Assembly: GCA_004431415.1 (NCBI GenBank)
Contig: QPMI01000017.1
Span: 620,001 to 684,000 of the forward strand
Source: Cyanophora paradoxa CCMP329
Taxonomy: Eukaryota > Plantae > Glaucophyta
Length of the DNA: 64,000 bases
Reading direction: 5' to 3'
In this document: piece by piece, positions 7,580-43,900 of the stretch
Layout: the number at the start of each line of letters is the position of its first letter
How positions within the stretch are numbered: position 1 is the first letter of the stretch
Translations under genes and position numbers: made by a program
The notes under the pieces: model-generated
What the model saw: the letters and a program-made list of their open reading frames with translations, nothing else
Told to the model about the DNA's origin: nothing
Database searches by the model: none

Positions 7580-9478
7580 CACGGAGAGGTCATGAGCCGC
7601 CCGCGCACCAAGCCAAGTCGGTGTAGCTAAAAGACAGAGCGCGAGGCGTGCGCGCCGTGGACGATCGAAGAGCCATGCCGGCCGCCAAGAGTGCGCTCCG
7701 CTGGCGCCTACTGCATTTCTTCTCTGCCCGCTCACACGCATCGGGCGGCGCAGCGGGTCAAGGAGACCTCGAGCAGATGCTGGGCTCCGCGGAGGGATCG
7801 GGAAACGCGGAGCGGGAGCAGGCGCGCGCGCTGCTGAAGCTCGGCTCCTTCGGGCGGGAGCTCGTGCGGCAGTCGAACCTGCGGGCGGCGGAGCGGCTGC
7901 GGCTGCTGCAGCTGCAGGAGGAGCTCCGCGGGAAGAAGCCGGCCTCGGGCAGCCTCTCCCGCGGCCGCGGCGTGGCGGCGCTCTTCCAGGGCGGCGGCGG
8001 GGCCTCCTCCTCCTCCAAGGCCGGCCCGGGCTCCCGCGCCGCCGCCCCCCGCTCCTCCAGCGTCGCCCAGCGCGCCTCGAAGCGCGTCATCCTCGAGAAG
8101 CAGTCGGCGGCGCCGCGGACCGCTGGCGGCGGCGCCGCCTTCAACCGCATCCTCAACGAGATCAAAACCCTCCTCTGGTCCGCCCCGCCCCGCCCCGCCC
8201 CGCCCCGCCCCGCCCCGCCCCGCCCCCTTCCGGTCCGAGCGGCGGGGGCGGGCACAGGCAGGCGGACCGGCTGGAGCAGGCCCACGGGCTCCTCATCCCG
8301 GGCGCCTGGACCCAGGGCCGCTTCGCTGACGCCAAGTACGACTTCTACGTGCGCCGTACCCCCCAATCGATTTATCCCCCCTTTCCCGGCTGACCCCGAC
8401 CTCCCCGCAGGCCTTCGAGTGTACGCGCCGCGCTCCGCTCCCCGCCGCCCCTCTTCTCCCGCTGCGGGCCCCGACCCGGGCCCCGCGCGCAGACCTGGAG
8501 CGTGTACCCCTGACGATCCAGGTGGGGGGGCGGAGGGCCCCGTGGAGGTGTACGCGGACGTGGGCAACCTGTACCCCTCCGACGACCGCTTCATGTGGCA
8601 CGCGCAGCTCGCCGCCACCGGCGAGTCCCTCGTCGTGCGTACCCCCCCTGCTTCCCCCTCCCGTCTTGCCCCCCTTCGGTCCTGACAAATCGTATCCCCT
8701 CCGCTCCGCTCCCCGCAGCTGGACCTGGAGAAGGAACCCGAGATCCCTTCCGCGGTACCCCCGCCCCGCCCGTTCCCCCCTCCATGGGGGCTTACCGCTC
8801 GGGGCAGTGCTGGGTGTTCGTGTCGGCGCGGCCGGCGGGGCGGTCGGCGGGCCCGTACGCGATCCGGGTCTCGTGCAAGCAGCACAGGAAGCTGGGGCAC
8901 GAGGCCCCAGCCCAGGGCCGCGTCAACGGCACCGGCTTCGTCCACTGCAAGTACCAGGCACGCCCTCTCCGCCCCCGCCCCGCCCTGCCCCGCCCCCCTC
9001 CTTCTGCCCCTGACAACGCGGTTTCTGCCATCTCGTCCCAGGTGCCCGCGGGGCACAACTACGTGGCGGTGCAGATGACCCTCGTGCGGGGCTCGGCCGA
9101 GCTCGTCGCCTCCACCACCGACGAGTTCCCCACCCGCGGCCCGCCCGCCCGCCCGCCCCCGCCGCCCGCCTCCTCCGCCCCCAGCTCTCCTCTGACGAGG
9201 CCGCGCGCACGCAGCCAAGCCGCAGTACAAGGGGAGCCGCGTGGGGCAGGACACGGTGGTCGTCGAGGTGGACGACCCGAACCTCAAGACCAACGGCGCG
9301 CCCGCCCCCCGCCGCCCCTTGCTCGCTCCCCTCTCTCTTACCGCCGCCTCAGACTGGGTGTACGTGGGGGTGGGCGGGTGCGACGAGGAGGCGCGCTACG
9401 TCCTCCGCGCCTCCTCCGAGCGCCGCGAGCGCCTCCGCCGCCCCCGCCGCGCCTCCACCTCCCCGGCCCCCGCCGGCC

Positions 9479-22701: not shown

Positions 22702-25700
22702 ATGTCGGGCGACCAGCGAGAGCTGGAGCGCGTGCGCGAAATAAACACCCGGGCCGCAAAGGAGATTCTGGCGAAGCGCTTCGCCGCGTTCGAGTCGCTA
22801 ATCGGCGACATAGATCTTGACTACGACGAAGAGGTGCGCGATGCGCTGCAGACGCGGTTTCCAGCGCGTCCAAGCGCTCCGCCGCCTAACCCGAGTAACG
22901 CTCGTCCGACCTTTGCCCTCGCATCGGGCTGACAGGATGTCGTGGTGCGTCCTCCTTGCTTGTGTGGCCGCGCACCTCGCTTTGCACCGCCGGCCGCTCC
23001 GGGCCCCCAGCTCCGCTCCAAACGGACCGAGCAGCTGCCGCTGTGTTCCCAACCCTGAGCCGCCCAGCGCCTCTATCTACGCCACACATGACGTTAAGAT
23101 AGCGATCTTAACTCGTAAAAAATGCCGCTAGACGCCGGACGGCATCGCCAGCCCGCCGGCTCTCCTTCGCGCTCCGCTGACCGGACGCTCGCAGATCTCC
23201 TTCCACTGCCAGTACCGGCAGCTCGGGCTGCAGCCGAACACGCTCAGTGCGCGCAGCTCCCTCGCTCGACCGCCGCCGCCGCCGCCGCCGCCGCCCCCTT
23301 CTGACCGGCGGCGGGCAGTCTCCGTGACGGGCTCGCCGCGGTGCCTCGGGGCGTGGGACGTGCGGCGGAGCGTGCCGATCGGCGAGCACGGCGGCCTCTT
23401 CATCCACGTCAGCCGCTCCATGCTCCCCTTCGAGTTCAAGTTCATCATACGGTACCCCCTGCCCCGGCGCCGCTGCTGTACCCCCCCGGCCCGCACCCGG
23501 GCCCTCGCCGACATTCGCCCGGCGCAGGAAGGACGACAAGATTCTGTGGCAGAAGGGTGGCAACTTCAAGGTGCGCGGGGTACAGCGGCCGCCCTAGTTT
23601 CCGCCCCTGACCCCCCCTCCCCTCCGGGGGGGAGCAGATCGGGGGGAAGATACCGGACCGATTCGACCTCGACGTCGAGATGTACATGGGCGAGGTACCC
23701 CCCGCTCACCCTCTCCCCACCTTGTCCCCTCCCCCCCCCTCGCTTTCCGCCCGCCGATCCTCGGGGTACAGGTGACGGACAAGGACAAGAAGCCGATCAC
23801 GTTCAACGACTACTCCTGGCACCATTACCAGTGGGCCCTCACGAACGGGGTACCCACCTCCCCATCCGCAACCGCGTACCCCCGCCAACTTCCTCGCCAA
23901 AAACAGAACACGGCGCGCGTCACGCTGGAGTGCGACCACATGTACCTGGACCCGAGCTGCCGCCTCCGCCGCCTCCTCGACGCCGCCCTCAAGGCCCTCG
24001 ACGCCGCCGCCGTCCCGGTACCCACCTCCCGTTCTTCCCCCGCTCCCCCCCACCACCCCCTATCCTAAAGAGGCGGGCAGGCGCAGCCGGCGTCGGCGCC
24101 GGTGGCGGCAGAGACGGACGTCGACGAGGGCGAGCTGCGCCGCGCCCAGGCCCGCCTCGCGGAGCTCCTCGCGCAGGTACATGTACCCCCCTGAATCATC
24201 ACCCCCCTCCCCCCAACGCCGCGCCCCCCGGCCGCTCGCCTGAGCGGCTGCAGGTGGCGCTGCTGCGGGAGGACGTACCCCCCGGGGCGGGCCGCGCGGC
24301 CGCCGACGCCGCCGACGCGTACGTCGAGGCGGCCGCCGCCGCACTCGCGATTCAGGCCCGCGTACCCCCCGAAACCTCGTCCCCCCCGCAACCCTGTCAC
24401 TGAGGCGGGGGCGCAGGTGGCTGCGGCCTCGGTGCCGGCCTCGGCGCTGGCGGCGGGGGAGGAGGGGCCGGCGCCCGGGGGCCGGCTGCTGGACCTCTCG
24501 CCGGCCTCCCTCCGCCGGGCCGCGGCGCACGCCGCCCCGGCCCCGCCGACGACGTCCGCCACCCCTCCCGCTCCGTGCGGCCGGCCCTGCCCCAACTCGC
24601 CCGCGCTGCTCAAGTTCGCCCTGCGCCTGACCCCCCCCCCACACCCCAGATCGTGGCGGGGTACCGCGTGCTCAAGGCAGGCGACGGACCCTCGGGCCAG
24701 CGCGCGCTGGCCTCGGGCCTGCCCCCCGACGCCGGCTCGTACGCTGTCGGGCCGGAGGCCGCGCCCGCCGCTCGGCCCTCGCGGTCGAGGCCGTGGACGC
24801 CCGGGGTACCCGCCTCGCCGTCTCGGCGTCGGTACCCGTCCCAGAGGCCCCGCGCCGGCGGCCGCGGCGGGCGGGCCCCAGGGGCGCCGCGGCGGCTGCG
24901 GGCGGCCTGCACGGCGGCGCTGGGCTCCATCCCGGCGGCCGTGAGCCTCGAGTGGGATCCGCCGGCCCACGCCGGCGCCTCGCCCCTCGCCTCGTACGAG
25001 CTCTCCTGCAACGGCCGCCCCCTCGCCACGCTCCCCGCGGCGGCCCCGCACCCCGGCTACTCCGCGGCCCTCCCCGAGCTCCCGTGGGCGGGCCCCGGCG
25101 GCCTCTACGTCTTCGCGGTGGCGGCGCGCAACGGGGAGGGCGCCGGCCCCGCCTCCCGCCCCGCCGTCTGCGCCCCCGTCGCCGCCGGCTTCGGCGCGGA
25201 GGCCGCCGCCGCCCTCCCCTCGCCCTCTTCTTCGACGACGCCGGCGGCCCCGTGCGCCGCGCCCCGGTCCCCTGCCGTACCCCCCTCGGGCTCACTCCCC
25301 CCTCCCGGCAGGTGGTGCTGTGGGCGCCGCACGCGGGGCGGTGGAGTGGGCCGACCGGGAGCCAGAGGGGGCGCAGGCGGAGGCGGCGCTGCGGCGGGCG
25401 CGGCGGGCCGGCGAGCTGGCCAAGGCGGCGCGCATGGCCCCGGGCAAGGAGGCCGTCGTCGCCGTCCTGCGCGCCCTCCGCGCCGCCGGCGCCCGCCTCG
25501 CGGCGCTCGAGGCCGAGGCCGCCCGCCTCCGCTCGGAGCTGGAGGCCGCCGAGCGCGCCGCCGGCGAGGCCGCCGCCGCCGCCGACGCCCTCCGCGCCAA
25601 GCTCGCCGTCCGCCGCTCCTCTGAGCGCCCGCCGCCCGCCCTCCGCCCACGCCTCCGCGCGCGCAGGAGAAGTCGACAGAGGCGGCGGAGCTGCGGGGCC

Positions 25701-28700
25701 GGCTCGAGCGGCTCGAGGCCGAGCTCGCCGCCGCGCAGCGCGCCGCGGCGGAGGCCGCCGCCGCCGCCGATAACATCCGCGCGCAGCTCGCGGTCAGCTT
25801 AAGCGTAAAGCTGCGCGTCAAGCAGCGAGCGCAAAGTCTCACGCCGGCGCGCAGAAGCACTCCGGGGCCGGCGCGGACCTGCAGGGGAGGCTCGCGGCGC
25901 TGGAGGCCGAGCTCGCCGCCGCGCAGCGCGCACGGGACGAGGCCGCCGCCGCCGCCGCCAGCCTCCGAGCGGAGCTCGCGGTCCGCCCTCCGCCCCGCGC
26001 TTTCCACGGCCTTTGGAACGCTCAGCGGCTCACGCCGGACCGCAGAAGCACTCCGGGGCCGGCGCGGGCCTGCAGGAGAGGCTCGCAGCGCTAGAGGCCG
26101 AGCTGGCCGCCGCGCAGCGCGCAAGGGACGAGGCCGCCGCCGCCGCCGCCAGCCTCCGAGCGGAGCTCGCGGTCCGCCCTCCGCCCCGCGCTTTCCACGG
26201 CCTTTGGAACGCTCAGCGGCTCACGCCGGCGCGCAGAAGCACTCCGGGGCCGGCGCGGACCTGCAGGAGAGGCTCGCGGCGCTGGAGGCCGAGCTGGCCG
26301 CCGCGCAGCGCGCAAGGGACGAGGCCGCCGCCGCCGCGGACGCCCTCCGAGCCCAGCTCGCGGTCTGCACGCCCTCCGCCCTGCGCGGCCCGCGGCCTTC
26401 GCAACGCCCAGCGGCTCACGCCGGCGCGCAGAAGCAGGCGGAGGAGGGCGCGGGGCTGCGGGGCCGCCTGGGCGGCCTGGAGGCCGAGCTCGCCGCCGCG
26501 CAGGGCGCGAGGGACGCCGCCGCCGCTGCCGCCGACGGCCTCCGCGAGCAGCTCGCGGTCCGCCCGCCCTTTCCTCTGAGCCGGAAGCTCGAGGCCTCGC
26601 CCCGACGCCGGCCCCGGGTACAGAAGAAGCTGGGGGAGCTCGCGGGGATGAACGGTCGCCTGGAGGGCCTCGAGGCCGCCCTCGCCGCCGTCCGCCCCGC
26701 CCCGCTCACCTGACCCCTGATCATGAGCCCGGCCCGCCTGACTTCTCTCGAACTTGTCTGCAGTGCCAGCGGCCGGGGGCGCCGCGGAACCTGCGCGCCG
26801 CCCCCGCGGGCGAGGGCGCCCTGACGCTCTCCTGGAGCCCCCCGGGGGGGGGCGCCCCCCCCCCCCCCCCCCCCCCCCCTCCCTCCCTCGCGCGCCTGAC
26901 GTGGACGGGCCTGCAGCCGTTCCTGCCCTCGGTGCCCGGGGCGGAGGCGCCGACGCACTACGAGGTCTTCGAGGGCGAGCGGCCGGCGGGGCGCGTGGCG
27001 GCCCCGGCCACCGCCTGCGAGGTCCCCCGGCCCGCCCCCGGCCTCCCCGCCGCCTTTGCGGTGCGACGGCCCTACCTTCTGTAAAGCCTCGGGCGGCGCC
27101 GGCGCTCACGTGGCGGGGCGGGGCGGGGAGCAGGTGCGGGCCGCCTCGGCGCGGGGCCCGGGGCCCCTCTGTGCCCCGCTCGCTGTCGGCGACCTCGCCG
27201 CCCCCGCCGCCCCGCCCGGGCCTTCCCCGCCCTTCCCGCCCTCCCCGGCGCCCCGGGCGCCCCGCGCGCCTCCCCCGCCGGCCGGGCGCCCTCCGCCTCG
27301 AGTTCGACCCCCCCGAGGGGTCCGTGCCCCTCGGGGGCTACGAGATCCTGGCCGACGGCGCACCGTGCGCCCCGCCCTTCCCCACCCTCTCCCCGCCCTC
27401 GCTCACCGGCGCCGGCGCAGGATCGGGCGGGTGCCGGCCTCCGCGGGCCCGCCCTTCTCGTACGTGGCGCGGGGCCTGACCCCGGCCGCCCCGCCGCCTT
27501 CGCCGTCCGCGCCTTCTGCGCTGGCGGTATCGGCCCCGCCTCCCGCCCCGTCGTCGCCTCGGCGGCGGCCCCGGGCCCCCCACGGGCCTCCGCGCCCTCT
27601 CCGCCGACTGCACCTCGGCCACCGTCGCGTGGGACGCACCCGCGGGGGCCGCCGCCGCCGGCGTGACGGGGTACGCCGTCTACGTGAACGGCGCGCGCGC
27701 GGCGGGGGCGGGGGCGGAGGACGCGCAGGCAACGCTCACGGGCCTCAAGCCGGGCCGCCCCTACGCCGTCGCCGTCGCCTCGCTGGCGGGGCCGGCCGAG
27801 GGGCCCCACTCGGCCCCCATCGCCCTCGCCACGGCCTCGGGCCTCCCGCCCGCGCCCGAGGGCCTCCGCTGCGCGGCGTGCGGGGCGCGCAGCGTGCGCC
27901 TCGAGTGGGCCGCCTGCGCCCCCGAGCACGGGGCGCCCGCCGTCGAGGCCTACGAGGTCTTCGCCGACGGCGCCAAGGTCGGCGAGGTCCCGGCGCAGGC
28001 GCAGGCGTCCGGCAAGGGCCGCAAGCCCCCGGCCCCGGTTGCCTACGAGGCCGCCGGGCTGGAGCCCGGGCGCCCCGTCGCGTTCACCGTGCGGGCCCGC
28101 TCGGCGGCCGGCGCGGGGCCGGCCTCGCCCCCGCTCGTGGCGCGGGCCGGGGGCGAGGGCCCCGGGGCGCCCCGGGACCTGCTCGCCTCCCGCGTGACTC
28201 ACGAGGCGGCCACCCTCGAGTGGGCCCCGCCGGACGCGCCGGAGCCGCCCGCGGTGGCCGACCCCCCCGCCTCCTACCAGGTCTTCTGCAACGAGCGCAA
28301 GGTCCTGGCCGCACCCGTACCCCAGCGTCTTCCCCCCCCCCCGCCCGTTCAACGGGGTACGCGCAGATGGCGGAGGTGGCGGCGGGTGGGCCGGACGACT
28401 CGGCGGTGTACGAGGCGGAGGGCCTGCCGCCGGGCACGCCCCACTCCTTCACCGTCCGCGCCGTCGGGTGCGCATGCGCGGGGCCGAGCGGAGCGGGCTT
28501 CGCGCACTCTGGCGCGCGATCCTGCTCACCGCCGCTCGTGCAGGGCCTCGGGGGCGGTGGGCCCGCACAGCGGCCCGGCGCTGGTGACGACGGCGCCGCT
28601 GCCGGGGAGCGCCTACGGGCTCCGGGCCGAGCCGGAGGGGCCAGACGCCGTCCGCCTCCGCTGGGCCCTCCCCGCCCCCCTCGCCGCCCTCGGCGGCTTC

Positions 28701-30673
28701 CGCGTGCGCCCGCGCGCCCGGCCCCTTGTCTTGCCCCGACTTCAAAGCTTGAGGGCCCGGCCCGCCGCAGTCGTTCGCGGTGCTGCAGGACGGCGCGCAG
28801 GTCGCCACCGTGCCCCTCCCGGCCCCGTGCGCCCCCCTCCGCCCCGGTCCGCCCCCCCGCGCACCTCCCGACGCCCCGGGCAGTTCACCCCGGAGAGCAA
28901 GCAGCAGCGGAAGAAATCTGGCGGGGCGGCGGCGGCGGCGGCGGGGCGGCACGGCCGGCCCCCGCGGCCGTGCCCCTCGAGCACCTCGTGGCGGGCCTCG
29001 CCCCGGGGGCCGCCCCGACCTTTGTCGTGAGCCCGCTGCCCGAGGGCCGCGCCCCGCCCTCCTCCCCGCTCCTCGTCCTCGTCCTCGGCGGCGGCGCCGC
29101 GGTCCCGGTAGGCGCGGCGGCCCCGGCGGCGGCCCCGGCACCGGCGGCGGCCCCCGCCCGGGCGGCCCCGGCGGCGGCGCCCCCGGGGGGGAAGTTCCCC
29201 CTGCGGCTGGTCCGGGCGGAGGCGGGGGCGGCGGAGCTGCGCTGGGCCCACCTGCTCGACCCGCCGGGCGTCCTCTCCTACTCCATCTTCGCCGACGGCG
29301 CCGTGCGCGCCCCCGCCCGCTCCATCGCTCTCTGATCCCTTCTTATGTATCTCTTTTCGACTTCGTCTTACCCCCGCGCAGCTCTGCGGCTCGGTGCCGG
29401 TCTCGCAGACGGGCCTGCCCCCTCCCGAGCTCTCCCACGCCGCGCGGGGCCTGCCCTTCGGCTCCACCGTCACGCGCGTCGCCCTGTACCCCCACCCCGT
29501 TCCTCCGAGCACTTCGTTCTCACGTGCACGGCCCGCAGTTTCACGGTGCAGGCGGTGACGCAGGACGGCCCCGCGCTCGAGTCGGAGCCCCTCGCCGTGG
29601 AAATCCCGTACCCCCGCCTCCACCTCGACGTGGAGGACCGCGGGGCCGACTCCGCTACCCTCCGCTGGAGCCCCCTGCCCATGCCCGAGGCCCGCCCGCC
29701 CCCGCGCCGTTTCGCGCCACGTACCCCCCCTGAACTCCGCCTTCTCCAGGTGGAGAGGTACGACGTTCTGCAGGACGGGGCGGTCGTGGGGAGCGTGCCG
29801 GCGCCCCCGGCTCCACCCCCGGGGACCCCGGAGGCCGCCGCCGGCCCCCTGCCCCTCAATTTCACCGCCGCGCCCCTCAAGCGTGCGCCCCCCGCGCGCC
29901 CCGCGCCCCAGCCTGCAGCCTGCCTGACCCGCGGCCGGGCCGGCAGCCACGGAGTCGTACACGTTCGCCGTGCAGAGCGTGCTGCGCCCCCCGCCGGCCG
30001 CGGCCGCGCCGCCCGCCTCGGCGCGCCCCCAGGGCATCCTCTCCAACCCCGCGGTTCCCCCTTCCCTCCTTTCCCCCCCTCCTTGTAGATCTTCGCCCTG
30101 ATCGCGACGCGCGCGTCTGCCGGCCGCAGCTGGTCTGCCTGCAGCCGCGGACGCCGCGGGGCAGCTTCCCGCTGCGCGTCGCCTCGGTGGGGCACACCTC
30201 CGTCCTGCTCGAGTGGGAGGCCCCGCGGGAGCCGCCCGCCCCCGTGCGTGCCTACGACGTCTACGTCGACGGTGAGAAGGTCGGGAGCGCCCCCGCGGAC
30301 GGCGGCACGCAGTCCGGCAAGTTCTTCTACCCCGTCGACGGCCTCGAGGGGTACACCCTCTACGCCTTCGACGTCGTCGCCGTCCTCGAGTCGGGTGCGC
30401 GCGGACTCCGGTGCCAGTCCCGGCGCCGGCGTGGGGCCCGGCCCGACCCCGCGCAGGCCCCGGCGTGAGCTCGCAGACGGCGGAGGCCGAGACCCTCTCG
30501 GAGCCCGTGCGCATGCGCCCCTCCGCTCCTCTCATCCCCTCTCTTCTCCTCGCCCCTCGCCCTCTTCTCCTGAGGCGGGGGCCGGGGCCGGGGCGGGGCA
30601 GGAGGACACGGAGTGGGTGGTGGGCGTCATCGACCGCTTCGACGTCGGGTTCATGGACTCCGCCAGGGGCTGA
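22702..30673 (+). CDS. Giant multi-exon protein: CBM20-like domain, coiled-coil repeat region, multiple fibronectin type III domains
   Basis: About 23195-23570 reads ISFHC...SVTGSPRCLGAWDVRRSVPI...FEFKFII (CBM20-like). 25320-26700 is heptad repeats. FN3 signatures recur (VSLEWDPP..YEL..NG..YVFAVAARNGEGAGP; VTGYAVYVNG..LTGLKPGRPYAVAV; GLEPG; GLPPGTPHSFTV; TSVLLEWEAP..YDVYVDG..GLEGYTLYAFDV). Apparent frameshifts sit at homopolymers; could be more than one gene. Confidence 0.7.
25667..26557 (+). repeat. Tandemly duplicated exon+intron units (126-nt exons, about 191-bp period) encoding 42-aa coiled-coil repeats
   Basis: Exons start at 25667, 25855, 26046, 26237 and 26432. Each is flanked by cag|...ctcgcg|gt and encodes ..L.xRL..LEAELAAAQ.A...A.AAA..LR..LA. 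Confidence 0.9.
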
Positions 30674-31346
30674 CCCCGAGGGCCGCCCGAGGGGTACCGC
30701 AGAAGAGCTTCGCATGCGCCGCCTGGGGGCCGGGGGCGACGTCGGACGATCACAGTGATTTGTAAATCTGCAATCGTGCCCAAATTCAAGTTTCGAACGA
30801 GATCTGACGACAGCGAGCTTTCCCTCCTCCCGCACCCTGGCACCCTCCATTTATATTCCGACGTTCCCACTGCAGCTGGCCATGGGCCACGTAGTTACAT
30901 GCTAACTAGTAAGAGATTATAATCAACAAGCGAGTCCCTGCGGAGCAGGAGTGGCCTTGGGTCTTGGGGCTTCAAGGCGTGAGGGTGGCAGCTCTTTGTT
31001 TTTAAACGGGGGCCCGCAACCGCGCGCGGTTACGGGGGAGGGTGGAGGAGAGCTGCGGGGGGGTCCACTCGGCAAGGGTACACACTCAAGTAAGAGGGTA
31101 CAGAATTGTGCCGCAAGGGTACAGATATCGATATCGATGCGGGGCCCAATCGGCCGAAATTGTACCGAGTACAGGCCCTTCGCGCCCGCCAGCCTCAAGA
31201 GGCGCCATACAACGCCGTTCCGCTGCGCTCTCCTTTCCCCAAGGCCGACATTTTTATGGCAGCAGTCGACGTCTGGCCACAGTCTGTCTGGGCCAGTGGC
31301 AGGCAGGCACTGGCAGCACTGGCAGGGCCACAGTCTGGCAGCCTCA

Positions 31347-31621
31347 GGCCGTTTTCCCCATGTAGGACTTGCCGTAGTCGGGAATTAGGTAATTAGGTAA
31401 TTAGGTCGAACACGCACCTTTTTTTGCGGACGATCCTCGAACCGGTAAAAATCTAATTAGCTTGGAATTCGAGGAGGTCGGGCCGGACCTCCTCGAGTTC
31501 CGGCTAATTAGGTCGGCCTGTCCCGAACTAGTTTTGAGGCCGTACCCCTCCCCTCGTCGACGAAAGACCCCTAATTACCTAATTACCTAATTCCAAGTCG
31601 CCGCGCGTGGGGAAAACGCCC
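31347..31621. mobile_element. PIF/Harbinger(Tourist)-like MITE, 275 bp, foldback structure
   Basis: TIRs GGCCGTTTTCCCCA / TGGGGAAAACGCCC (14 bp, 1 mismatch). 3-bp TCA on both flanks (31344-46 and 31622-24). Inverted subterminal (AATTAGGT)3 arrays and a central hairpin gaattcgaggaggtc...gacctcctcgagttc. Confidence 0.8.
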
Positions 31622-32146
31622 TCAGAACCAGGGAAAAGCCAGCAGGCTCTGATGCGACGGATCAGACACCAGGGACCCGGGAAAAGCGCTAGCCAGCACT
31701 GCCCAGCAGGCTCTGATGCGACGGATGCCGGATGACAACCCCTCGATCGTCTTTCTGCCTGTATAGACTTCTTTGAGCCGGTCAGCAGCGTTTAATTGCT
31801 TTGGATACTATGATAGTGGATAAGAGAGCGTTCTGAACAGTTTGGCGACGTTTCTGCTCTGTCCGAGCGGGGATTCTTTGGCGAGTGTGGGGGTGGTTAT
31901 CCGATGATCGATAACATACGGTGCCATAATAATAATATAAAATAATGGTGCTAAAGATTATCAATAGCGGTCACGATTTGCCAAGAATTAATAATACCAT
32001 CACTGAACAGTACTAGCTGTTCTAAATACGTAAGTTGACTTAACGTTAACGTACTATAGGCCTAGCTACTGTATAGCCTATATATATAGCCTATAGGCTT
32101 TTCATACCGGTACCGGTAGCTACGGACCTACTACTAGGCTACTAGG

Positions 32147-32536
32147 TAGGGTTGGTGAATTTCATGAAATTCAAAAATTTGGCGTTGAAACTGAAAGTCG
32201 ACCCTTTGAAAGCTTTGAAAATTCAATTGAAATTTCAATCCGCAGTGCAGCACTTGCAGAGACCCCACGCACTGCAGAGAGTCTCTTTCACTCTGAATTG
32301 TCTCTAATCGACTTCACTCTCACTCTCTGAGACTCTTTACGGGCTGGGAGGGCTCCCGGGAAGGCCGGAGGGGCTGGGAAGGGGAAGCTGAGGGTGCGAA
32401 AACGGAGAAATTCAATATATTTTATTATTTTTATATTCTATTTCAATGCAATTTCAACGGGCGGCGTTGAAATTGAAATTGAAATTTCAATTTTAATGCA
32501 ATTTCAATGGCTTGAAATTTCAAGCTGCCAACCCTA
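32147..32536. mobile_element. Non-autonomous hAT-type element (MITE), 390 bp
   Basis: TIRs TAGGGTTGG / CCAACCCTA. Perfect 8-bp TSD CTACTAGG (32139-46 and 32537-44). Subterminal TTGAAA/TTTCAA motif arrays. Confidence 0.9.
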
Positions 32537-33541
32537 CTACTAGGCTACGGTCACCGGCCCGACACCGGGTATACTATGATACGTAATACTATGATAGCGA
32601 GCTAGCCGCCTGAGCCTGCCAGAAGTAGCCTAGTATACGTACTAGTAGCTAGCGCTGGCCCGCTGGGAGCCTGGGACTCTTCGGAGCCTGAGTTCGAGAC
32701 CCGGGCCGGGGAGTCGTCGGCCGGGGGTTCTTCCTTCATTTTAGGTGGAAGGTACAGTACCTGAGAGCCGAACAGCCTCTTACGAGCCGAGCTCGAGGTT
32801 GGAGGCCGCCGGCGCCGGCCGCGGCGCTTTGTGGACCCGTCACCCGGGGTCCCGGACGGCGGACGGGGCCGGACCCCGAGAATGGCTAATCATTGGCTAT
32901 TATAAATAATTAATGCATGCGCATAGGCGGCACCAAATTAAGGCGTTTTTTGGAGCTTTTTGGGCCAAATTAATCCCGGGGTTTGGCCGGTTTAGTACTA
33001 CGGTAGGCCATAAATAATTAAGACTTCGCTGCGGAGCGCTTTAGTAGCGACCGTGGGCGCAGGGCGCGCGAGGCTAGGGGGTGCGCTCGACGCCGTCGAC
33101 GTCCGGACTCCGGAGTCCCTAAAGCTTCGCGCTCCCTCTCACTACGTACACGGTACACGTACAGCTGTACCGGCGCCACCGCGCTCCGTACCCCCCAAGG
33201 CCTCGGTTTAATAGTATTAAACTTTTGAAAATCTTTATATAATTAGTAATCAGGCTTCAAAACTTTAGTACCATTAATATCCAACCTCTTAAATATTTCC
33301 TGCTTTACAGTTGTACTGCCGCACTGCGGCAGTGCCGCAGACAGCCCGCAGTGCCGCATGCGCAGTGCGGCTGCCAGTGCCTGGCATTGTGGCTATTAAT
33401 GCGGCACCAACTTGGCAAATTAATGCGTTTTGAAGCCTTTTGGCTGCATGTGGGGGGTACAGACCGCAGTTTCTTAGCGCTTCGATATTAATGCGCGGCT
33501 TTATTATGCGCCCCCAAATTAATGCGTTTTGACGGCAGAAA

Positions 33542-36500
33542 ACGCGTGCAACGTCATTAATAACATTAATGACCATTATCATGAGCGCGCACCCCAATTG
33601 CAAGACTCACGATCATGTGCGCGTGCACGTGCATCTGCAGATGCTTCGGATTATTCAGCCAGCCGTGCTGTGGGTGCGCGTGTGTGTTTCGAGTTCCAAT
33701 GCAGGGATTTTAATTATTATAAACAATATTAATACATCATGATCATGATCGATTAAACGAAAACACGCGTCGAGGTTTATATATATATATATAGTAAATG
33801 ACGATATCGGGGGCGCGCTGCAGACGGCTCGGGACTCGATGGAAACTTCATGTCGGTCAAGGGTTTCCATTCAGCTGTGGGCGACGCAGCGCCATGGGTT
33901 CGCATCTCCTATGATCAGTCGCTCACACAGTTCTTTCCAGCCCCCCTGCTTGGACCCATTCTGATCCTGTTAAACGTTGCCGTCGTTCGCAGTGGAAGGT
34001 AGACCTGCAGAAAAACCACGCCATCTCATCTGTGCAGATCTACAATGTGCGTTGCAGTTTCGTTCTTTCACCTCCGGAATATGCTGAATCGGATTGTGAC
34101 TGTTCACGTGCGCGGCAGCGATCGGACAGTGCGTCAGCGCTTGCGATTTCAATCGTATCGAGATTGAATCTCTTAATGACTCCCGTCCTGATCACGTCCG
34201 GACCTGATATTGCGATTCGATCGTGACAGATGACCTTGGTAGTCGTCTCAAGAACTTCGTTATCGAAGTTTTGGACGACAATAAGACCGTGCGAAATATT
34301 GATAGATATGCTAGCTCGAAAGTTTATTTTTTTCTGGATCTACTAAGATAGCTAAAGCTCTCGCTCTATAGCCGCACGTCGTTCTCTCCGGTCCCGGGTT
34401 TCCCTTTTTACTCACACGATAAGCCCCTAGGCCGCGCATATTTATGGATGCTTCTTCTTCTTCGCGCATATTTATGGATGCTGATCAGCCGTTAACGTTG
34501 CTCCGTTTACTTACTCCACCGCAGGTGCACCAAACCGCTCTCATCGCCAGTCCCACCTTCAGCCAACTTAAGCCAAACGTGTTCGAGCTTCCTCTCGACG
34601 GTGTTGTCGGTGCGCATGCGCTCGCTCGATGCTCTAATTTAATTTCTATTTTATCTGTATATGTACAAATACCGTAGTATATACATATATGCATGTGATA
34701 AACAAGGCAATGATGATATATATCGGTGTATATTGATCATGATATTTGGATTGAACCCATTCGTTTAATTTATATATACAATTATGCAGTCGCCACGCGT
34801 GCGTTAAAGAATTCGCAATGCACCAGATAAATACATTATATGTCGGATCAGATGTGCTTTAGCTTGCATACGCCTGATCATGATCATTTACATGAGCTCG
34901 AAGCCCTCAAATCTGAAACTTTATCGCTAGCTTTAAATCGAGCACTCAAGATGTTCGACATCATCGAGAGAATTCGAAATTCATTTCGAATTCGAACTTG
35001 ACTTTCTCGGCAGGCGACGCTGTCAAGATTTCCTTCCCATCCGGGGGTTCGAAAAAGCGACTTTCAGCGCAACCGATGTGGATGCAATCAAGTCGCTCAC
35101 GTGCACAACCGCCCGCAATCGTTTGCAGGTTATATAAACATTGGGGAGGTACAGGTCATGGGTGAGAGAAACCTTTCCGGACTCGATTTCTCAATTTGCA
35201 ACGAGGCAGCAGTCTCACCGTGTCGAGGCTGACAGGGACAGATGCTCCAACTAATGTCGCACTCAACAAGCCCTGCTCTGCGTCCTCGGCATGTGAGTCT
35301 TTGAAACCCTTTTTCAGCGCGTACGCGTGCAACGTCATTAATAACATTAATGACCATTATCATGAGCGCGCACCCCAATTGCAAGACTCACGATCATGTG
35401 CGCGTGCGCGTGCATCTGCAGATGCTTCGGATTATTCAGCCAGCCGTGCTGTGGGTGCGCGTGTATGCTTCGAGTTCCGCTACATTACAGGGTTTATAAT
35501 ATATACCGTAGTACTTATAATTACAAATACGTCATGATCATTTCATTGAAAACCCGCGACGAGGATCACACTGAATTTCGAGATCGGGGTGCGCTGCAGA
35601 CGGCTCGGGGCTCGAAGGAAACTTCATGTCGGTCAAGGGTTTCCATTCAGCTGTGGGCGACGCAGCGCCATGGGTTCGCATCTCCTATGATCAGTCGCTC
35701 ACACAGTTCTTTCCAGCCCCCCTGCTTGGACCCATTCTGATCCTGTTAAACGTTGCCGTCGTTCGCAGTGGAAGGTAGACTTGCAGAAAAACCACGCCAT
35801 CTCATCTGTGCAGATCTACAATGTGCGTTGCAGTTTCGTTCTTTCACCTCCGGAATATGCTGAATCGGATTGTGACTGTTCACGTGCGCGGCAGCGATCG
35901 GACAGTGCGTCAGCGCTTGCGATTTCAATCGTATCGAGATTGAATCTCTTAATGACTCCCGTCCTGATCACGTCCGGACCTGATATTGCGATTCGATCGT
36001 GACAGATGACCTCGGTAGTCGTCTCAAGAACTTCGTTATCGAAGTTTTGGACGACAATAAGACCGTGCGAAATATTGATCCTAATAGATATGCTAGAGAG
36101 TTTACTTTTGTCTGTATACGTATCTGATATTGATATTGATAGCGAAAGCTCTCGCTCTATAGCCGCACGTCGTTCTCCTGTCCCGGGTTTCCCTTTTTGA
36201 CTCACACGATATATATATAAGCCCCTAGGCCTCGCATATTTATGGATGCTTCTTCTTCTCAGCTTTTAATATTACTCCACTTCCTCCACCGCAGGTGCAC
36301 CAATCCTCTCTCATCGCCAATCCCACCTTCAGCCAAGAGAAGCCAAACATGTTTGTGCTTCCTCTCAACGGTGTTTTCGGTGCGCACGCGCGCGCACATC
36401 TACATATGGATTGGACATAGTTATTTATGCAATCGCTACTCGAATTAGCAATTTACCAGATAAATATATACAGTACATGTCGGACCGGATGCGTGTGCAT

Positions 36501-36906
36501 TCGCCTGATCATGATCATTTACATGAGCTGGAAGCTTCGAATTCTTAAGCTTTATCGCTAGCTTCAAATCGAGCACTCAAGATGTTCGACATCGCCGAGA
36601 GAATTCGAAATTCATTTTCAATTCGAACTTGACTATCACGACAGGCGACGCTGTCAAGATTTCCTTCCCATCCGGGGGTTCGAAAAAGCGACTTTCAGCG
36701 AAATTGATGCATTTGTGGATAACATTGCGTCGCTGACGTGCACAACTGCACGCAATCGTTTGCAGGTATAATGAACATTGGGGAAGTACAGGTCATGGCT
36801 ATTGGTGAGAGAAATCCTGCGAATTCTGAGTTAGATTCTCAATTTGCACGAGCCAGCAGTCTCACAGCGTCGAGGCTCCCGGGCTGACAGGGACAGAGGC
36901 TTCCAC
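33542..36906 (+). repeat. Internal tandem duplication (about 1,781-bp period) corresponding to two lectin domains
   Basis: 33542-35250 is homologous to 35323-36906; exons are near-identical and introns more diverged. Confidence 0.9.
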
Positions 36907-37292
36907 CATGGACTGCGTGGCGGTACCAGGATCTGCTAATACTATCCTATGTGCGCCGAAGACTGTATCCTATGTATCCTTAACCTTCCCGCTTCATCTA
37001 AGGTTTTTGACTGCATGTTTTGCAGGCAAAGAAGTACAGCAGGACGTCGTAAATGCTGATACTTTTCAATGTGCGCTGAAGACGTGTGCTTTTCGCTTTA
37101 ATTTGGTTTTTGACTGCATGTTTTGCAGGCACGAAAGTACAGCGTCTCGATGGCGCCGTTGATGTGGTTGACATCGAAGAGCTGGAGCATGAGTATGATG
37201 TTGAGCTCGAGCTGGAGCAAGATGCTGATTTTGCTGGGCTCTCTGCTGAACTAGCTATGGAGAATGCGGCTTTGATCATGATCGATGCTTAA
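33641..37292 (+). CDS. Tandem F-type lectin (fucolectin/FTP, F5/8C-like) domain protein with acidic tail; 5'-truncated, possibly a pseudogene
   Basis: Micro-exons splice in frame to TNVALNKPCSASSA|YASDYSASRAV|DGSGLEGNFMSVKGFHSAVGDAAPW|WKVDLQKNHAISSVQIYN|RSD|NDLGSRLKNFVIEVLDDNKT|VHQ...GV.|GDAVKISFPSG|G..NIGEVQVM. The domain occurs twice; domain 1 lacks its first (NVAL) exon. Stop at 37292. Confidence 0.85.
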
Positions 37293-37448
37293 GAGTGAAA
37301 TAATCAGAGCTTCGACCTTCATCACGATCATAATCATGAGTTGTGTTTGCTGTTACAATCGACCAAGCCGTCGACCTCGCAAAAAACCACGATTGGCATT
37401 AAATCATTATATATAATTAAGTGTTTCAGATCCCTGGCGCCTGCGCAT

Positions 37449-37565
37449 GCGTGGGGCCCGACCCACGGCAGGCCGCCGGGCGCAGCCTGGCAGGCCCCGG
37501 CGTGAGCTCGCAGACGGCGGAAGCCGAGACCCTCTGAGCCCGTACGCGTGCGCCCCTCCGACGTT
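37449..37565 (+). repeat. Dispersed direct-repeat copy of the 3' part of the FN3 gene
   Basis: Matches 30429-30525 (gcaggccccggcgtgagctcgcagacggcgg.agccgagaccctct...), joined through TCCG to acgtt as at 30857-30865. Confidence 0.85.
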
Positions 37566-38555
37566 GACCTGAGGGCCCTCGAGCTCGCGCGCGTACGCTG
37601 ACCGCGGATTATTGCAAGGGGGGATTCCCCCTTGCTTCCCGTTCCCTCGCTTCAGCCAAAAGTTTTCCAATGAGGCCGTTTCCGAGGGCCAGTATGCAAC
37701 ACCAGAAAAAAAATGGGGCTTATTCGCGATCCGATTGGCTCGGTGGACCGGTCAGCCTTCGACTTTCGAGCGTCAAAGTCGAGCTCGCGAGAGCTCTCTC
37801 GAACTCGCGAAAAGTGGTTTTCGAGGGGAAAACCAACTCTCCCTCGTGCGGCGCTGTGTTGCATCACCGTGGCACGCGGCGGTTCTGCATGGAATCACTT
37901 CTCCCTAGCTGTCTCTAGATCTAGATTTCCGCTTCACTGCATCGAGCTTGCACCGCAGCACCGCCTACCGAGCACGCGCCGCTGCCCGCAGCCGAGCACG
38001 CTGCCCGGCACTCGTGGTTGAGTTTGCACCGCAAAACGCTTGCGCCGCAGCCTAGCTGCGCCGCTGCCTGGGCTCGCCGCTGCCTGGGCTCGCCGCAGCT
38101 GCAGTTTCGGTAGCAACACGGGCCTTTTCTATTTTTTCAATCATAACCTGTGTTTATCTTTAACCTTCGACCTGCCGCGCGCACTGGGCCGGGGCCGTTC
38201 TGCCGCGCGCATGTGCCGCCAGTGCGTGTCCACTAGGACTCTTTCATTAGATCCTGGTTCCCCCCTTGCACCCCCGGTGCGAAAATCGCGGCCGGGCCCC
38301 TAGTTATATCGTGCTTCAAGATTCGAATAGAGTCAAGCCTTGAAGCACGCGTACGCCGCCAGCTGTAGCCTGCTGTCGGGATGCTGCGATCGCGACCTGT
38401 ACTCACAACAAGGCTAGCAGGCGCGCGGGTCCAGAGCGTAGGCCTATAATTAATTGTAGTAAAGGGCATAGCTCGGGCGCCAAGAGGTATCAAAAAGGAG
38501 GCTATGAGAGAGAGACACACCCCTATCCGAGCAAATTGTTTCGAGGCCGTTATAA

Positions 38556-40964: not shown

Positions 40965-43900
40965 CTAGAGGAGCATGGGGATGCGGGAGAAGGGGAGCAG
41001 GGGCGCCGTCTGCTGGAGCTCGCAGGCGACGGCGTAGGCCTCGGCGGCCTGCGCCTCGCGCCCGCAGGCCTCGAGGAGAGAGCCGAGGGCGTGCCAGGCC
41101 TCGTGGTCGCCGGCGTCCATGCGGATGGCGGTCGAGAGGTGTGCCTCGCCCACCTCGTGCCGCCCCTGCTGCGCGTAGAGGCGCCCCGCCCGCACCATCG
41201 CCCCCGTGTGGCCCGCCCGCACCATCACCGCGTTCTCGTACAGCGCGATCGCCTCCACGAACCGCTCCTGCGCCTCCAGGAAGACCCCTTGCTGCGCCCC
41301 CGCGCCCCGCCCCTTCAGCCGGCGCCCCGCGCGGGCGGGTGACTGGGAGGGCAGAGCGTAAAGAGAAATGAGGTGGAAGGGAAAATGAAAGTGTGAGCGA
41401 GTTAGGTGACCGCGGCCCTCATATGAGTGGAGGGAAGCAGCGAATAAAACGCTCATATGCTCTCCGGCCCCTTAAGCACCAAGGGATCATTATTGTCGCC
41501 CACGGTGACTCTGGGGTCGGACGGAAAGCGTGGCTAGCACTAAACGGATGGCGGGCGGCGTGTGAGCGAGTTAGGTGACCGCGGCCCTCATATGAGTGGA
41601 GGGAAGCAGCGAATAAAACGCTCATATGCTCTCCGGCCCCTTAAGCACCAAGGGATCATTATTGTCGCCCACGGTGACTCTGGGGTCGGACGGAAAGCGT
41701 GGCTAGCACTAAACGGATGGCCTGCGGCGTGTGAGCGAGTTAGGTGACCGCGGCCCTCATATGAGTGGAGGGAAGCAGCGAATAAAACGCTCATATGCTC
41801 TCCGGCCCCTTAAGCACCAAGGGATCATTATTGTCGCCCACGGTGACTCTGGGGTCGGACGGAAAGCGCGGCTAGCACTAAACGGACGGGGGACGGCGTG
41901 TGAGCGAGGAATGTGACCGCGGCCCTCATATGAGTGGAGGGAAGCAGCGAATAAAACGCTCATATGCTCTCCGGCCCCTTAAGCACCAAGGGATCATTAT
42001 TGTCGCCCACGGTGACTCTGGGGTCGGACGGAAAGCGTGGCTAGCACTAAACGGATGGCGGGCGGCGTGTGAGCGAGTTAGGTGACCGCGGCCCTCATAT
42101 GAGTGGAGGGAAGCAGCGAATAAAACGCTCATATGCTCTCCGGCCCCTTAAGCACCAAGGGATCATTATTGTCGCCCACGGTGACTCTGGGGTCGGACGA
42201 GAAGCGTGGCTAGCACTAAACGGATGGCGGGCGGCGTGTGAGCGAGTTAGGTGACCGCGGCCCTCATATGAGTGGAGGGAAGCAGCGAATAAAACGCTCA
42301 TATGCTCTCCGGCCCCTTAAGCACCAAGGGATCATTATTGTCGCCCACGGTGACTCTGGGGTCGGACGGAAAGCGTGGCTAGCACTAAACGGACGGGGGA
42401 CGGCGTGTGAGCGAGGTAGGTGACCGCGGCCCTCATATGACTGGAGGGAAGCAGCGAATAAAACGCTCATATGCTCTCCGGCCCCTTAAGCACCAAGGGA
42501 TCATTATTGTCGCCCACGGTGACTCTGGGGTCGGACGGAAAGTGTGGCTAGCACTAAACGGACGGGGGACGGCGTGTGAGCGAGGTAGGTGACCGCGGCC
42601 CTCATATGACTGGAGGGAAGCAGCGAATAAAACGCTCATATGCTCTCCGGCCCCTTAAGCACCAAGGGATCATTATTGTCGCCCACGGTGACTCTGGGGT
42701 CGGTCGCCTAGAAAGCGGAAACCGAAGAAAGAGCAGAAACGAAACAAGAAAGTTCAAGGAAGAAGCTTAAGAGCGCTCGAACCGTGTAGAAGAGCTCGGC
42801 GGAGAAGGGGTCGAGCTGGTCGGCCTGCGCTATGCAGTACGCCGCGTCGTCGTGCATCTGCGCAGGCAGAGGGTGAGGGGGCGGCGGGCGGGGCGGCCGG
42901 TGGCCGGCCGGCCGGCCCTGCTCGCCTTCAGGGAGACGTAGGCCTGGGCGACGTGGAGCCAGACGTCGGGCTCGCGGACGCAGCAGGCGTAGCACGCCGT
43001 CGCCGCCTCCGCCGCCACCGCCTGGTGCGCGTCCATCCCGCACTGCAGCACCCGCGCGTGCGGCCTGCGCGCCGGCGCGCGTCAGGGGCGTCGGGGGCGT
43101 CGGGGGCGGGCGGGGCGGGGGCGCACTTGTCGGCGGCGACGGGGCCGGGGGCGCGGGCCTTGTCGGCGGGGACGTGGGCGGGGGCCATGGACGAGAGGAG
43201 GTACTGGAAGGTGGAGAGGGCGGCGTGGCCCCCCGAGAGCTCCATCTCGAGGTGGGCCTTGATGAGGAGCAGCAGGGGGTCCCGCGGGTGCTCGGCGAGC
43301 CCCGCCTGGCACGCCTTGAGCGCCTGCCCGTGCTGCCGCCCGCACGAGAGGAGCAGCGCGAGGAGCGCGAGGGCCCGCGGGTGCGTCCGGTCGCACTCCA
43401 GCACGTGCTTCACGCACGCCAGCGCCGCCGCGATCTGCGCGGCGGCGGCGCGGGGCCCGGCTCGACGCCGGCGGGGGCGGGCGGGGGCGGGCAGAGGGCG
43501 GAGGGCGGCGGACCTCGCGGATCTGGGCGTTGACGAGGGCGATGTGGAACACGATGTTCACGTCGTTCGGGTCGCCCTGCGCGGCGGGGCGTCGGCCAGG
43601 GCGGGGCGGGGCGGGGCGGGGGGCACCTGGTGCGCGGCGTTGAGCGAGTCGATCGCCTGCTGCAGGAACGACTTCTTCTCCGCCATCACCGACGCTGCGG
43701 GGGCGCGTGGGCGGGGGCCGCCGGCCGGGCGGGGCGGCGGGGCGGACCCTGGAGGGAGAGGCGGTAGCAGGCGACGCCGACGGCGTGGTGCGCGCGGGCC
43801 GCCATCGGGCCGCCCAGCATCAGCGCCTTCTGCGCGAAGTTGATCGCCGTCCGCAGCTGCCGTGCCGCCATGCGTGAGGCGGGCAACGAGCCGGCGCGGG

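Follow-up and report, generated by a model that had tools for sequence, protein, structure and literature searches.

Does the 169-bp tandem repeat that occupies the last coding intron of a TTC7-like gene in the glaucophyte Cyanophora paradoxa CCMP329 represent a satellite, or is it made up of RNA genes? The repeat lies on contig QPMI01000017.1 (assembly GCA_004431415.1) within positions 620,001 to 684,000, and the whole of this 64,000-nt stretch, here called the window, was analysed. Coordinates are counted from its first letter, and the host gene, its intron and all units of the repeat are read from the minus strand. An earlier note, made from the letters of this DNA, had interpreted the repeat as a series of box H/ACA small nucleolar RNA (snoRNA) genes directed at two sites of the large-subunit (LSU) ribosomal RNA (rRNA). 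Our results make it very probable that what looks like a 169-bp satellite consists of eight box H/ACA snoRNA genes, which follow one another in tandem and in sense orientation within the TTC7-like intron. The encoded RNA probably corresponds to SNORA3 (ACA3) of vertebrates, snR11 of yeast and snoR138 of Arabidopsis.

Layout of the array and structure of the unit

Tandem Repeats Finder placed the repeat at 41391–42703, with a period of 169, 7.8 copies, 97% matches and zero indels, and the anchor sequence CCAGAGTCACC occurred eight times on the minus strand at spacings of exactly 169 nt. Both results bear out the proposal of the earlier note that there are eight sense-strand tandem units of 169 bp, each comprising an RNA of about 132 nt and a spacer of about 37 nt; per unit, the RNA measures approximately 131–133 nt and the spacer approximately 36–38 nt. 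The homology between units sets in at the first basal-stem base of copy 1 (CCGACCCC, 42703) and ends at 41391, one base past the ACA of copy 8. The array does begin at the first stem and stop just past the last ACA, as had been claimed, and the repeated unit is consequently the RNA together with its downstream spacer.

RNAs of the H/ACA class consist of a hairpin, a hinge bearing the H box (ANANNA), a second hairpin and an ACA, and the edge of each guide pocket lies 14–16 nt from the respective box. Copy 7 was used as the reference for features within the unit. The order found in the 133-nt unit is hairpin, AGAGCA, hairpin, ACA and three further bases. The H box AGAGCA corresponds to RNA positions 59–64 (41627..41632 in copy 7) and conforms to ANANNA, while the ACA occupies positions 128–130 (41561..41563); both are aligned with the respective boxes of the SNORA3 model. 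The distance between the 3′ edge of the upper stem and the box, measured in the fold with open pockets, is 14 nt in both pockets, exactly as the earlier note had it. When the guide bases, the H box and the ACA were forced open, copy 7 gave the canonical two-hairpin fold at −41.5 kcal/mol. The free minimum fold reached −50.7 kcal/mol with partly closed pockets, which is usual for H/ACA RNAs, and both hairpins formed in the free as well as in the pocket-open fold. A single unit was more stable than 200 of 200 dinucleotide shuffles (z = −4.0), and this value, together with the canonical geometry of boxes and pockets, sustains the assignment to the H/ACA class. The spacer was searched for a stem-loop or another processing signal and none was detected in it, its fold amounting to −2.7 kcal/mol.

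Relationship to the SNORA3 family

To which H/ACA family does the unit belong? In an E-value search of the 41300–42800 segment, all eight units matched the Rfam family SNORA3 (RF00334) over positions 1–131 of the 131-position model, with 22.8–27.5 bits and E-values of 0.007–0.09, and no other H/ACA family of Rfam matched in this segment. From the 5′ end of the intron onward, the units are copy 1 (42572..42704, 23.7 bits), copy 2 (42403..42535, 22.8 bits), copy 3 (42234..42366, 27.5 bits), copy 4 (42065..42197, 27.5 bits), copy 5 (41898..42028, 23.7 bits), copy 6 (41727..41859, 27.5 bits), copy 7 (41558..41690, 27.5 bits) and copy 8 (41391..41521, 26.5 bits). The 36 nt between the Rfam matches of copies 7 and 8 (41522..41557) represent the spacer, which is the variable part of the unit. 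The columns aligned with SNORA3 retain AGAGUCAC and GUGCU in pocket 1, CGGAGAG at the H box, AUUC and ACC in pocket 2, and the ACA. For the whole window the E-value was 0.29 against 4,227 families, equivalent to approximately 7e-5 for one family named beforehand, that is, SNORA3. The scan for SNORA3/snR11 that the earlier note had recommended returned SNORA3 as the sole H/ACA family, end to end in eight of eight units, but below the gathering score, and since the score falls short of the Rfam cut-off the RNA is called here an SNORA3/snR11-type guide instead of an Rfam member.

Predicted rRNA targets

Guide complementarity was scored on eukaryotic LSU ribosomal DNA (rDNA) from metagenome contigs (108 loci), which had been retrieved by a search pattern that extends across the second site but leaves its sequence open. 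Two loci from human-skin metagenomes (L052 and L077), possibly human rDNA, were excluded from all counts. Pocket 1, composed of the 5′ strand AGAGUC (41676..41681 in copy 7) and the 3′ strand GCUUAA (41641..41646), is fully complementary to UUGAGC-UU-GACUCU with 6 + 6 bp, in which AGAGUC pairs with GACUCU 3′ of the target U, and GCUUAA pairs with UUGAGC 5′ of it, including one G-U pair. The claim that this pocket brackets a conserved UUGAGC-U-U-GACUCU proved well founded, as 96 of the 105 eukaryotic LSU sequences contain the site UGAGCUUGACUCUA. Among 12 whole rDNA loci scanned, it was also the top guide match in 11, the contig of the twelfth ending before the site, and only 15–17 per 1,000 shuffled guides reached the 12 bp of pocket 1. 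Yeast snR11 guides Ψ2416 of the 25S rRNA, with Um2417 and Um2421 as neighbours (PMC5699541). These two neighbours fit the sequence U-U-G-A-C-U, which agrees with a pocket 1 site of the snR11 type, in keeping with the earlier note; position 2416 itself was not countable, a yeast-like full-length LSU being absent among the fetched loci. Judged by complementarity and conservation, the pocket 1 site is a well-supported candidate target, and this assignment predicts that UUGAGCUUGACUCU should be present in the LSU rRNA of the host.

In pocket 2, the 5′ strand UUUUAUUC (41611..41618 in copy 7) and the 3′ strand CACCUAACU (41569..41577) can form 5 + 7 bp with AGGUG-UA-GAAUAAG where the LSU reads GAAUAA; the first five bases of the 3′ strand pair with AGGUG and the 5′ strand with GAAUAAG. 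This site lies 39 nt downstream of the pocket 1 site in 36 of 36 LSU sequences, the 5′ hairpin facing the upstream site. In chicken, the ACA3 homologue GGgACA41 is assigned to 28S-3409 by its 5′ hairpin and GGgACA42 to 28S-3448 by its 3′ hairpin, which are likewise 39 nt apart (PMC2653536). Spacing, hairpin order and homology to the model support the view that the two predicted LSU targets match those of the ACA3 homologues in the same hairpin order. The literature search found no paper giving the human legacy numbers U3899 and U3938 for SNORA3; their difference of 39 agrees with the spacing. The proposal that pocket 2 brackets AGGUG-U-A-GAAUAA agrees with the 39-nt spacing and with the hairpin order, which is that of chicken; the sequence of the site varies among eukaryotes, GAAUAA being found in 25 of 105 LSUs. 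The second target is accordingly a prediction, to which we give about two chances in three. An alternative site for pocket 2, UGAAGGUG-UN-GAGUGAAG, located approximately 1,085 nt upstream and offering 5 + 8 bp (three of them G-U), was rejected as it occurred in only two (L002 and L018) of 12 LSUs.

Variation among the copies

Are all eight copies maintained as genes? The RNA core, counted from the basal stem to the ACA (129 nt), contains four variable columns, while the 3-nt tail and the spacer contain nine in 39 (Fisher p = 3e-4). The four variants of the core are all unpaired; three of them fall in the distal part of the pocket 2 3′ strand, the fourth in the hairpin 2 apical loop. Copies 3, 4, 6, 7 and 8 have identical bodies, which represent the consensus. 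Copies 1 and 2 share a variant that has a G in the hairpin 2 apical loop and in which the pocket 2 3′ strand reads CACCUACCU. In copy 5 this strand is altered to CACAUUCCU; of the five pairs that it forms beside the second target one is broken, and the pairing counts 3 + 7 versus 5 + 7. No consistent site for the altered guide of copy 5 was found elsewhere among the scanned LSU loci. Every stem, both boxes and pocket 1 are intact in eight of eight copies.

The snoRNA gene may be real and its eight-fold array nevertheless a neutral, unstable local expansion, in which one or a few copies function and the rest are decaying passengers. The broken pair of copy 5 beside the pocket 2 target is what such decay would look like, and an array with 97% identity is young, so that the absence of decay says little; the clustered spacer variants and the blocks shared by copies 1–2 and by copies 3, 4, 6, 7 and 8 are also expected from few recent duplications. 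We consider this explanation rather unlikely, because stems, boxes and pocket 1 have remained unchanged in every copy, as against 23% of the spacer columns that differ. The recent amplification assumed in the earlier note fits the 97% identity, but the spacers have diverged at approximately 23% of their columns, consequently the array is not brand new. Most likely, the array expanded by unequal crossing-over, and at least most of its copies are kept intact by selection or homogenisation.

Copy number and RNA evidence

Copy number and transcription were assessed with Logan contigs of public sequencing runs, which were compared with one unit and the unique flank rather than with the whole array. 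In the DNA run X1, the flank contig had a depth of 38.2, while the depth was 196.7 (5.1×) for the 130-nt consensus body and 82.6 (2.2×) for one spacer variant. These ratios fit the assembly, in which there are five identical bodies and two identical spacers, and the body at 5.1× the flank speaks against a single copy; as X1 may be the source data of the assembly, the agreement is a consistency check and not an independent proof. If the assembler had expanded one or a few genes, the copy number would be an artefact, and short-read contigs do collapse the array, none of those listed spanning it. This is exceedingly improbable, however, in view of the X1 depths, the existence of three body variants and several spacer variants, and the joint that "goes back 169", which was present in both DNA and RNA contigs. 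As a separate observation, in record 4 of X1 (window 41491–41520) the contig joining copy 1 to the unique 5′ flank had a depth of 12.7 versus 38.2 for the 3′ flank contig, which could be due to uneven coverage of GC-poor sequence or to heterogeneity at the 5′ edge of the array.

Is the array transcribed? Contigs of the runs X15, X17 and X18, which derive from three studies, match the last exon as far as 41292, where they pass directly into the end of the exon upstream. The spliced junction ...TTCTACACG|CAAGGGGTC defines an intron of 1,491 nt (42782..41292) with GT..AG borders, and its presence in the contigs of all three runs indicates that these runs, labelled as probable RNA, really are RNA. 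Each of them also contained a contig of the unit at a depth of 9.5–20, and copy 8 was covered in all three; in two of the three, the contig passed through the spacer into the next unit, forming the "goes back 169" joint. In contrast to the units, the single-copy tail of the intron at 41317–41379 was uncovered by contigs in X15, X17 and X18. The RNA contigs fit a multi-unit array RNA that outlasts the rest of the intron, but a low level of precursor or of DNA carry-over, summed over identical copies, could have the same appearance if the single-copy tail fell below the assembly threshold.

Evidence weighed against the snoRNA assignment

A number of observations weigh against the interpretation of the repeat as an array of SNORA3-type genes. 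At gathering scores, Rfam gave zero matches in the 64-kb window, and the SNORA3 scores are about half of the gathering score of 51 bits, which leaves the units outside the family by the membership rule of Rfam. The eight matches arise from one repeated sequence, hence they count as one observation, and zero paired positions vary among the eight copies, so the copies give no covariation. The variable columns of the spacers are clustered and maybe reflect few events, which makes the Fisher test supportive, not decisive. Guide complementarity was scored on the LSU sequences of other eukaryotes, the host LSU gene being located outside the 64-kb window. Pocket 2 taken alone is weakly significant, as 54–114 of 1,000 shuffles were as good. 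Furthermore, of 105 LSUs about 70 have a C after GGUGUAG, 25 an A, six a U and four a G; the guide has a U opposite this base, which can pair with A and, by wobble, with G, but not with C, so that a C in the LSU deprives pocket 2 of its 5′ arm. Finally, contigs cannot show the ends, the strand or the level of an RNA, and those of the array include the spacer, so that, instead of mature snoRNA, they may reflect precursor, DNA carry-over or a retained intron, added up over the copies.

Could the repeat then be a satellite, or derive from a snoRNA that has decayed, and yield no stable RNA, its likeness to SNORA3 and to the rRNA complement being residual or accidental? The sub-threshold Rfam score, the non-significant match of pocket 2 by itself and the lack of observed RNA ends in the contigs would all suit this explanation. 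It fails, however, to account for a SNORA3 match that is full-length and has both boxes in register, for two pockets that are both at 14 nt, or for two targets that are 39 nt apart and served in the hairpin order of the published ACA3 homologues. Likewise, all stems are intact in eight of eight copies despite the divergence of the spacers, and RNA of the array was seen where the flanking intron was not. We therefore regard a satellite as highly unlikely and retain the interpretation of the repeat as an array of H/ACA snoRNA genes.

Host gene and intron

The exons of the host gene were searched individually. The coding part of the last exon including the stop codon (40965..41291) aligns to the extreme C-terminus of human TTC7B (residues 741–843 of 843, E 1.2e-14), and Pfam TPR families matched it as well as other exons of the gene, which is on the same strand as the array. 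The upstream exon of 75 nt (42783..42857), ending in ...MHDDAAYCIAQADQLDPFSAELFYT, is defined by the reading frame and its acceptor, and its 3′ end is joined to 41291 in the RNA contigs (junction 42783|41291). Within the last intron, a unique pyrimidine-rich 5′ part of 78 nt (42705..42782) lies outside the repeat, and a unique 3′ part of 99 nt (41292..41390) follows it. All eight units therefore lie inside one spliced intron in the sense of the host gene.

The upstream neighbour intron is about 68 nt long (42858–42925), and by this measure the last intron would be of ordinary short length but for the array, which makes up 1,313 of its 1,491 nt. The earlier note had set the 1,491 nt of the last intron against 60–90 nt elsewhere; the length was verified by the spliced RNA junction, but the range of 60–90 nt was compared with this single intron of about 68 nt. 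The neighbour intron appears to have a GC donor and GC..AG borders, CTGAAG|GCGAGC...TGCGCAG|ATG, as read from the sequence and the reading frame.

Other features of the window

A second tandem array is located at 25565–26612, with a period of 191 (also scored as 386), about 4.5 copies, 73–88% identity and a very high G+C content. Its consensus reads as a coding repeat (LEAELAAAQRARDEAAAA...), and it is probably a repeated coiled-coil protein segment, not an RNA array. On the plus strand, sub-threshold Rfam matches to mir-343 were noted at 680–745 and 8249–8315 (29.3 and 27.5 bits, gathering score 70). They are probably GC-rich hairpins that matched by chance; the two resemble each other at a distance of 7.5 kb and might stem from one small repeat. 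In the 30000–38000 region the G+C content falls to 47–50% across approximately 6 kb, as compared with 64–81% in the rest of the window.

Discussion

How might eight RNAs be released from one intron? A mature H/ACA snoRNA is a stable RNA that ends 3 nt after the ACA and carries dyskerin, Nhp2, Nop10 and Gar1. H/ACA small nucleolar ribonucleoproteins (snoRNPs) form on the transcript as it is being made, and exonucleases remove the RNA as far as the protected particle. In the array, the RNAs would originate from the host pre-mRNA or from the excised intron, and each unit would be bound by the assembling snoRNP proteins. Trimming of the excised intron from its ends could free the outer units at most, so the inner ones need cuts in the spacers: an endonuclease would cleave the spacers, and exonucleases would then trim the pieces to the protected particles. 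By its 5′ hairpin, the RNA may place the LSU uridine of UUGAGC-U-U-GACUCU in the active site of dyskerin, and by its 3′ hairpin the uridine of AGGUG-U-A-GAAUAA, 39 nt downstream. We infer a stable RNA of 130 nt and two pseudouridines in C. paradoxa. Endonucleolytic release of the units would be analogous to that of the polycistronic clusters of plants, yeast and algae, which are known to be released by spacer cuts (PMC7671301).

Compared with known systems, the units resemble the vertebrate SNORA3/ACA3 RNAs (RF00334, SNORA3/SNORA45) in their size of approximately 131 nt, their intronic location, the full-length in-register match and the aligned boxes, as well as in the predicted roles of the hairpins, the 5′ one serving the upstream LSU site and the 3′ one a site 39 nt downstream (PMC2653536). 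The vertebrate genes, however, lie one per intron in RPL27A (PMC2653536), whereas the Cyanophora array has eight in one intron of a TTC7-like gene, a host without a link to the ribosome. Yeast snR11 has the same predicted first target, 25S Ψ2416, but it is listed with one site only (PMC5699541), and the likeness concerns the target. Arabidopsis snoR138, an H/ACA RNA listed as the equivalent of ACA3, with 25S 2445 as its P1 target, is encoded in a cluster (PMC2875012). It differs in its length of 116 nt, in having one listed pocket and in belonging to a cluster of different snoRNAs (snoR150/snoR138) rather than to an array of the same gene (PMC2875012).

As a finding the array is sound but ordinary, since green algae and plants are already known to have genes laid out in this way. 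Intronic snoRNA clusters of Chlamydomonas are reportedly the subject of a 2008 article by Chen et al. in Genetics, volume 179, page 21. Intronic or polycistronic snoRNA clusters, often with multiple isoforms, occur in Chlamydomonas, land plants, Ostreococcus and Euglena, and like the array they have several snoRNA genes per transcription unit or intron and a polycistronic precursor (PMC7671301). Unlike those clusters, the Cyanophora array consists of eight near-identical copies of a single H/ACA gene in a strict 169-nt period. Our literature search found no snoRNA survey for glaucophytes or for C. paradoxa.

The present finding leaves the knowledge of how H/ACA guides work unchanged, and its modest interest lies in the apparent age of the two-guide design, in an eight-copy array of the same gene within a non-ribosomal host, and in constant bodies versus drifting spacers. 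A lineage for which no snoRNA survey was found thereby gains a well-supported snoRNA gene whose targets are predicted. Annotators of the Cyanophora genome should be aware that "169-bp satellites" in long introns can be RNA genes. As one intron must yield eight identical snoRNPs, the locus also offers a handy substrate for studying how intronic polycistrons are cut. Beyond this, the finding points to a great age of the two-guide ACA3 design. More speculatively, and with rather low confidence, the Cyanophora genome may as a rule set the dosage of its snoRNAs by homogeneous intronic arrays of single snoRNAs, in which the bodies stay constant while the spacers drift, and the two-guide ACA3 design may be as old as the ancestor shared by Archaeplastida and animals, the second guide having been lost in fungi and plants.

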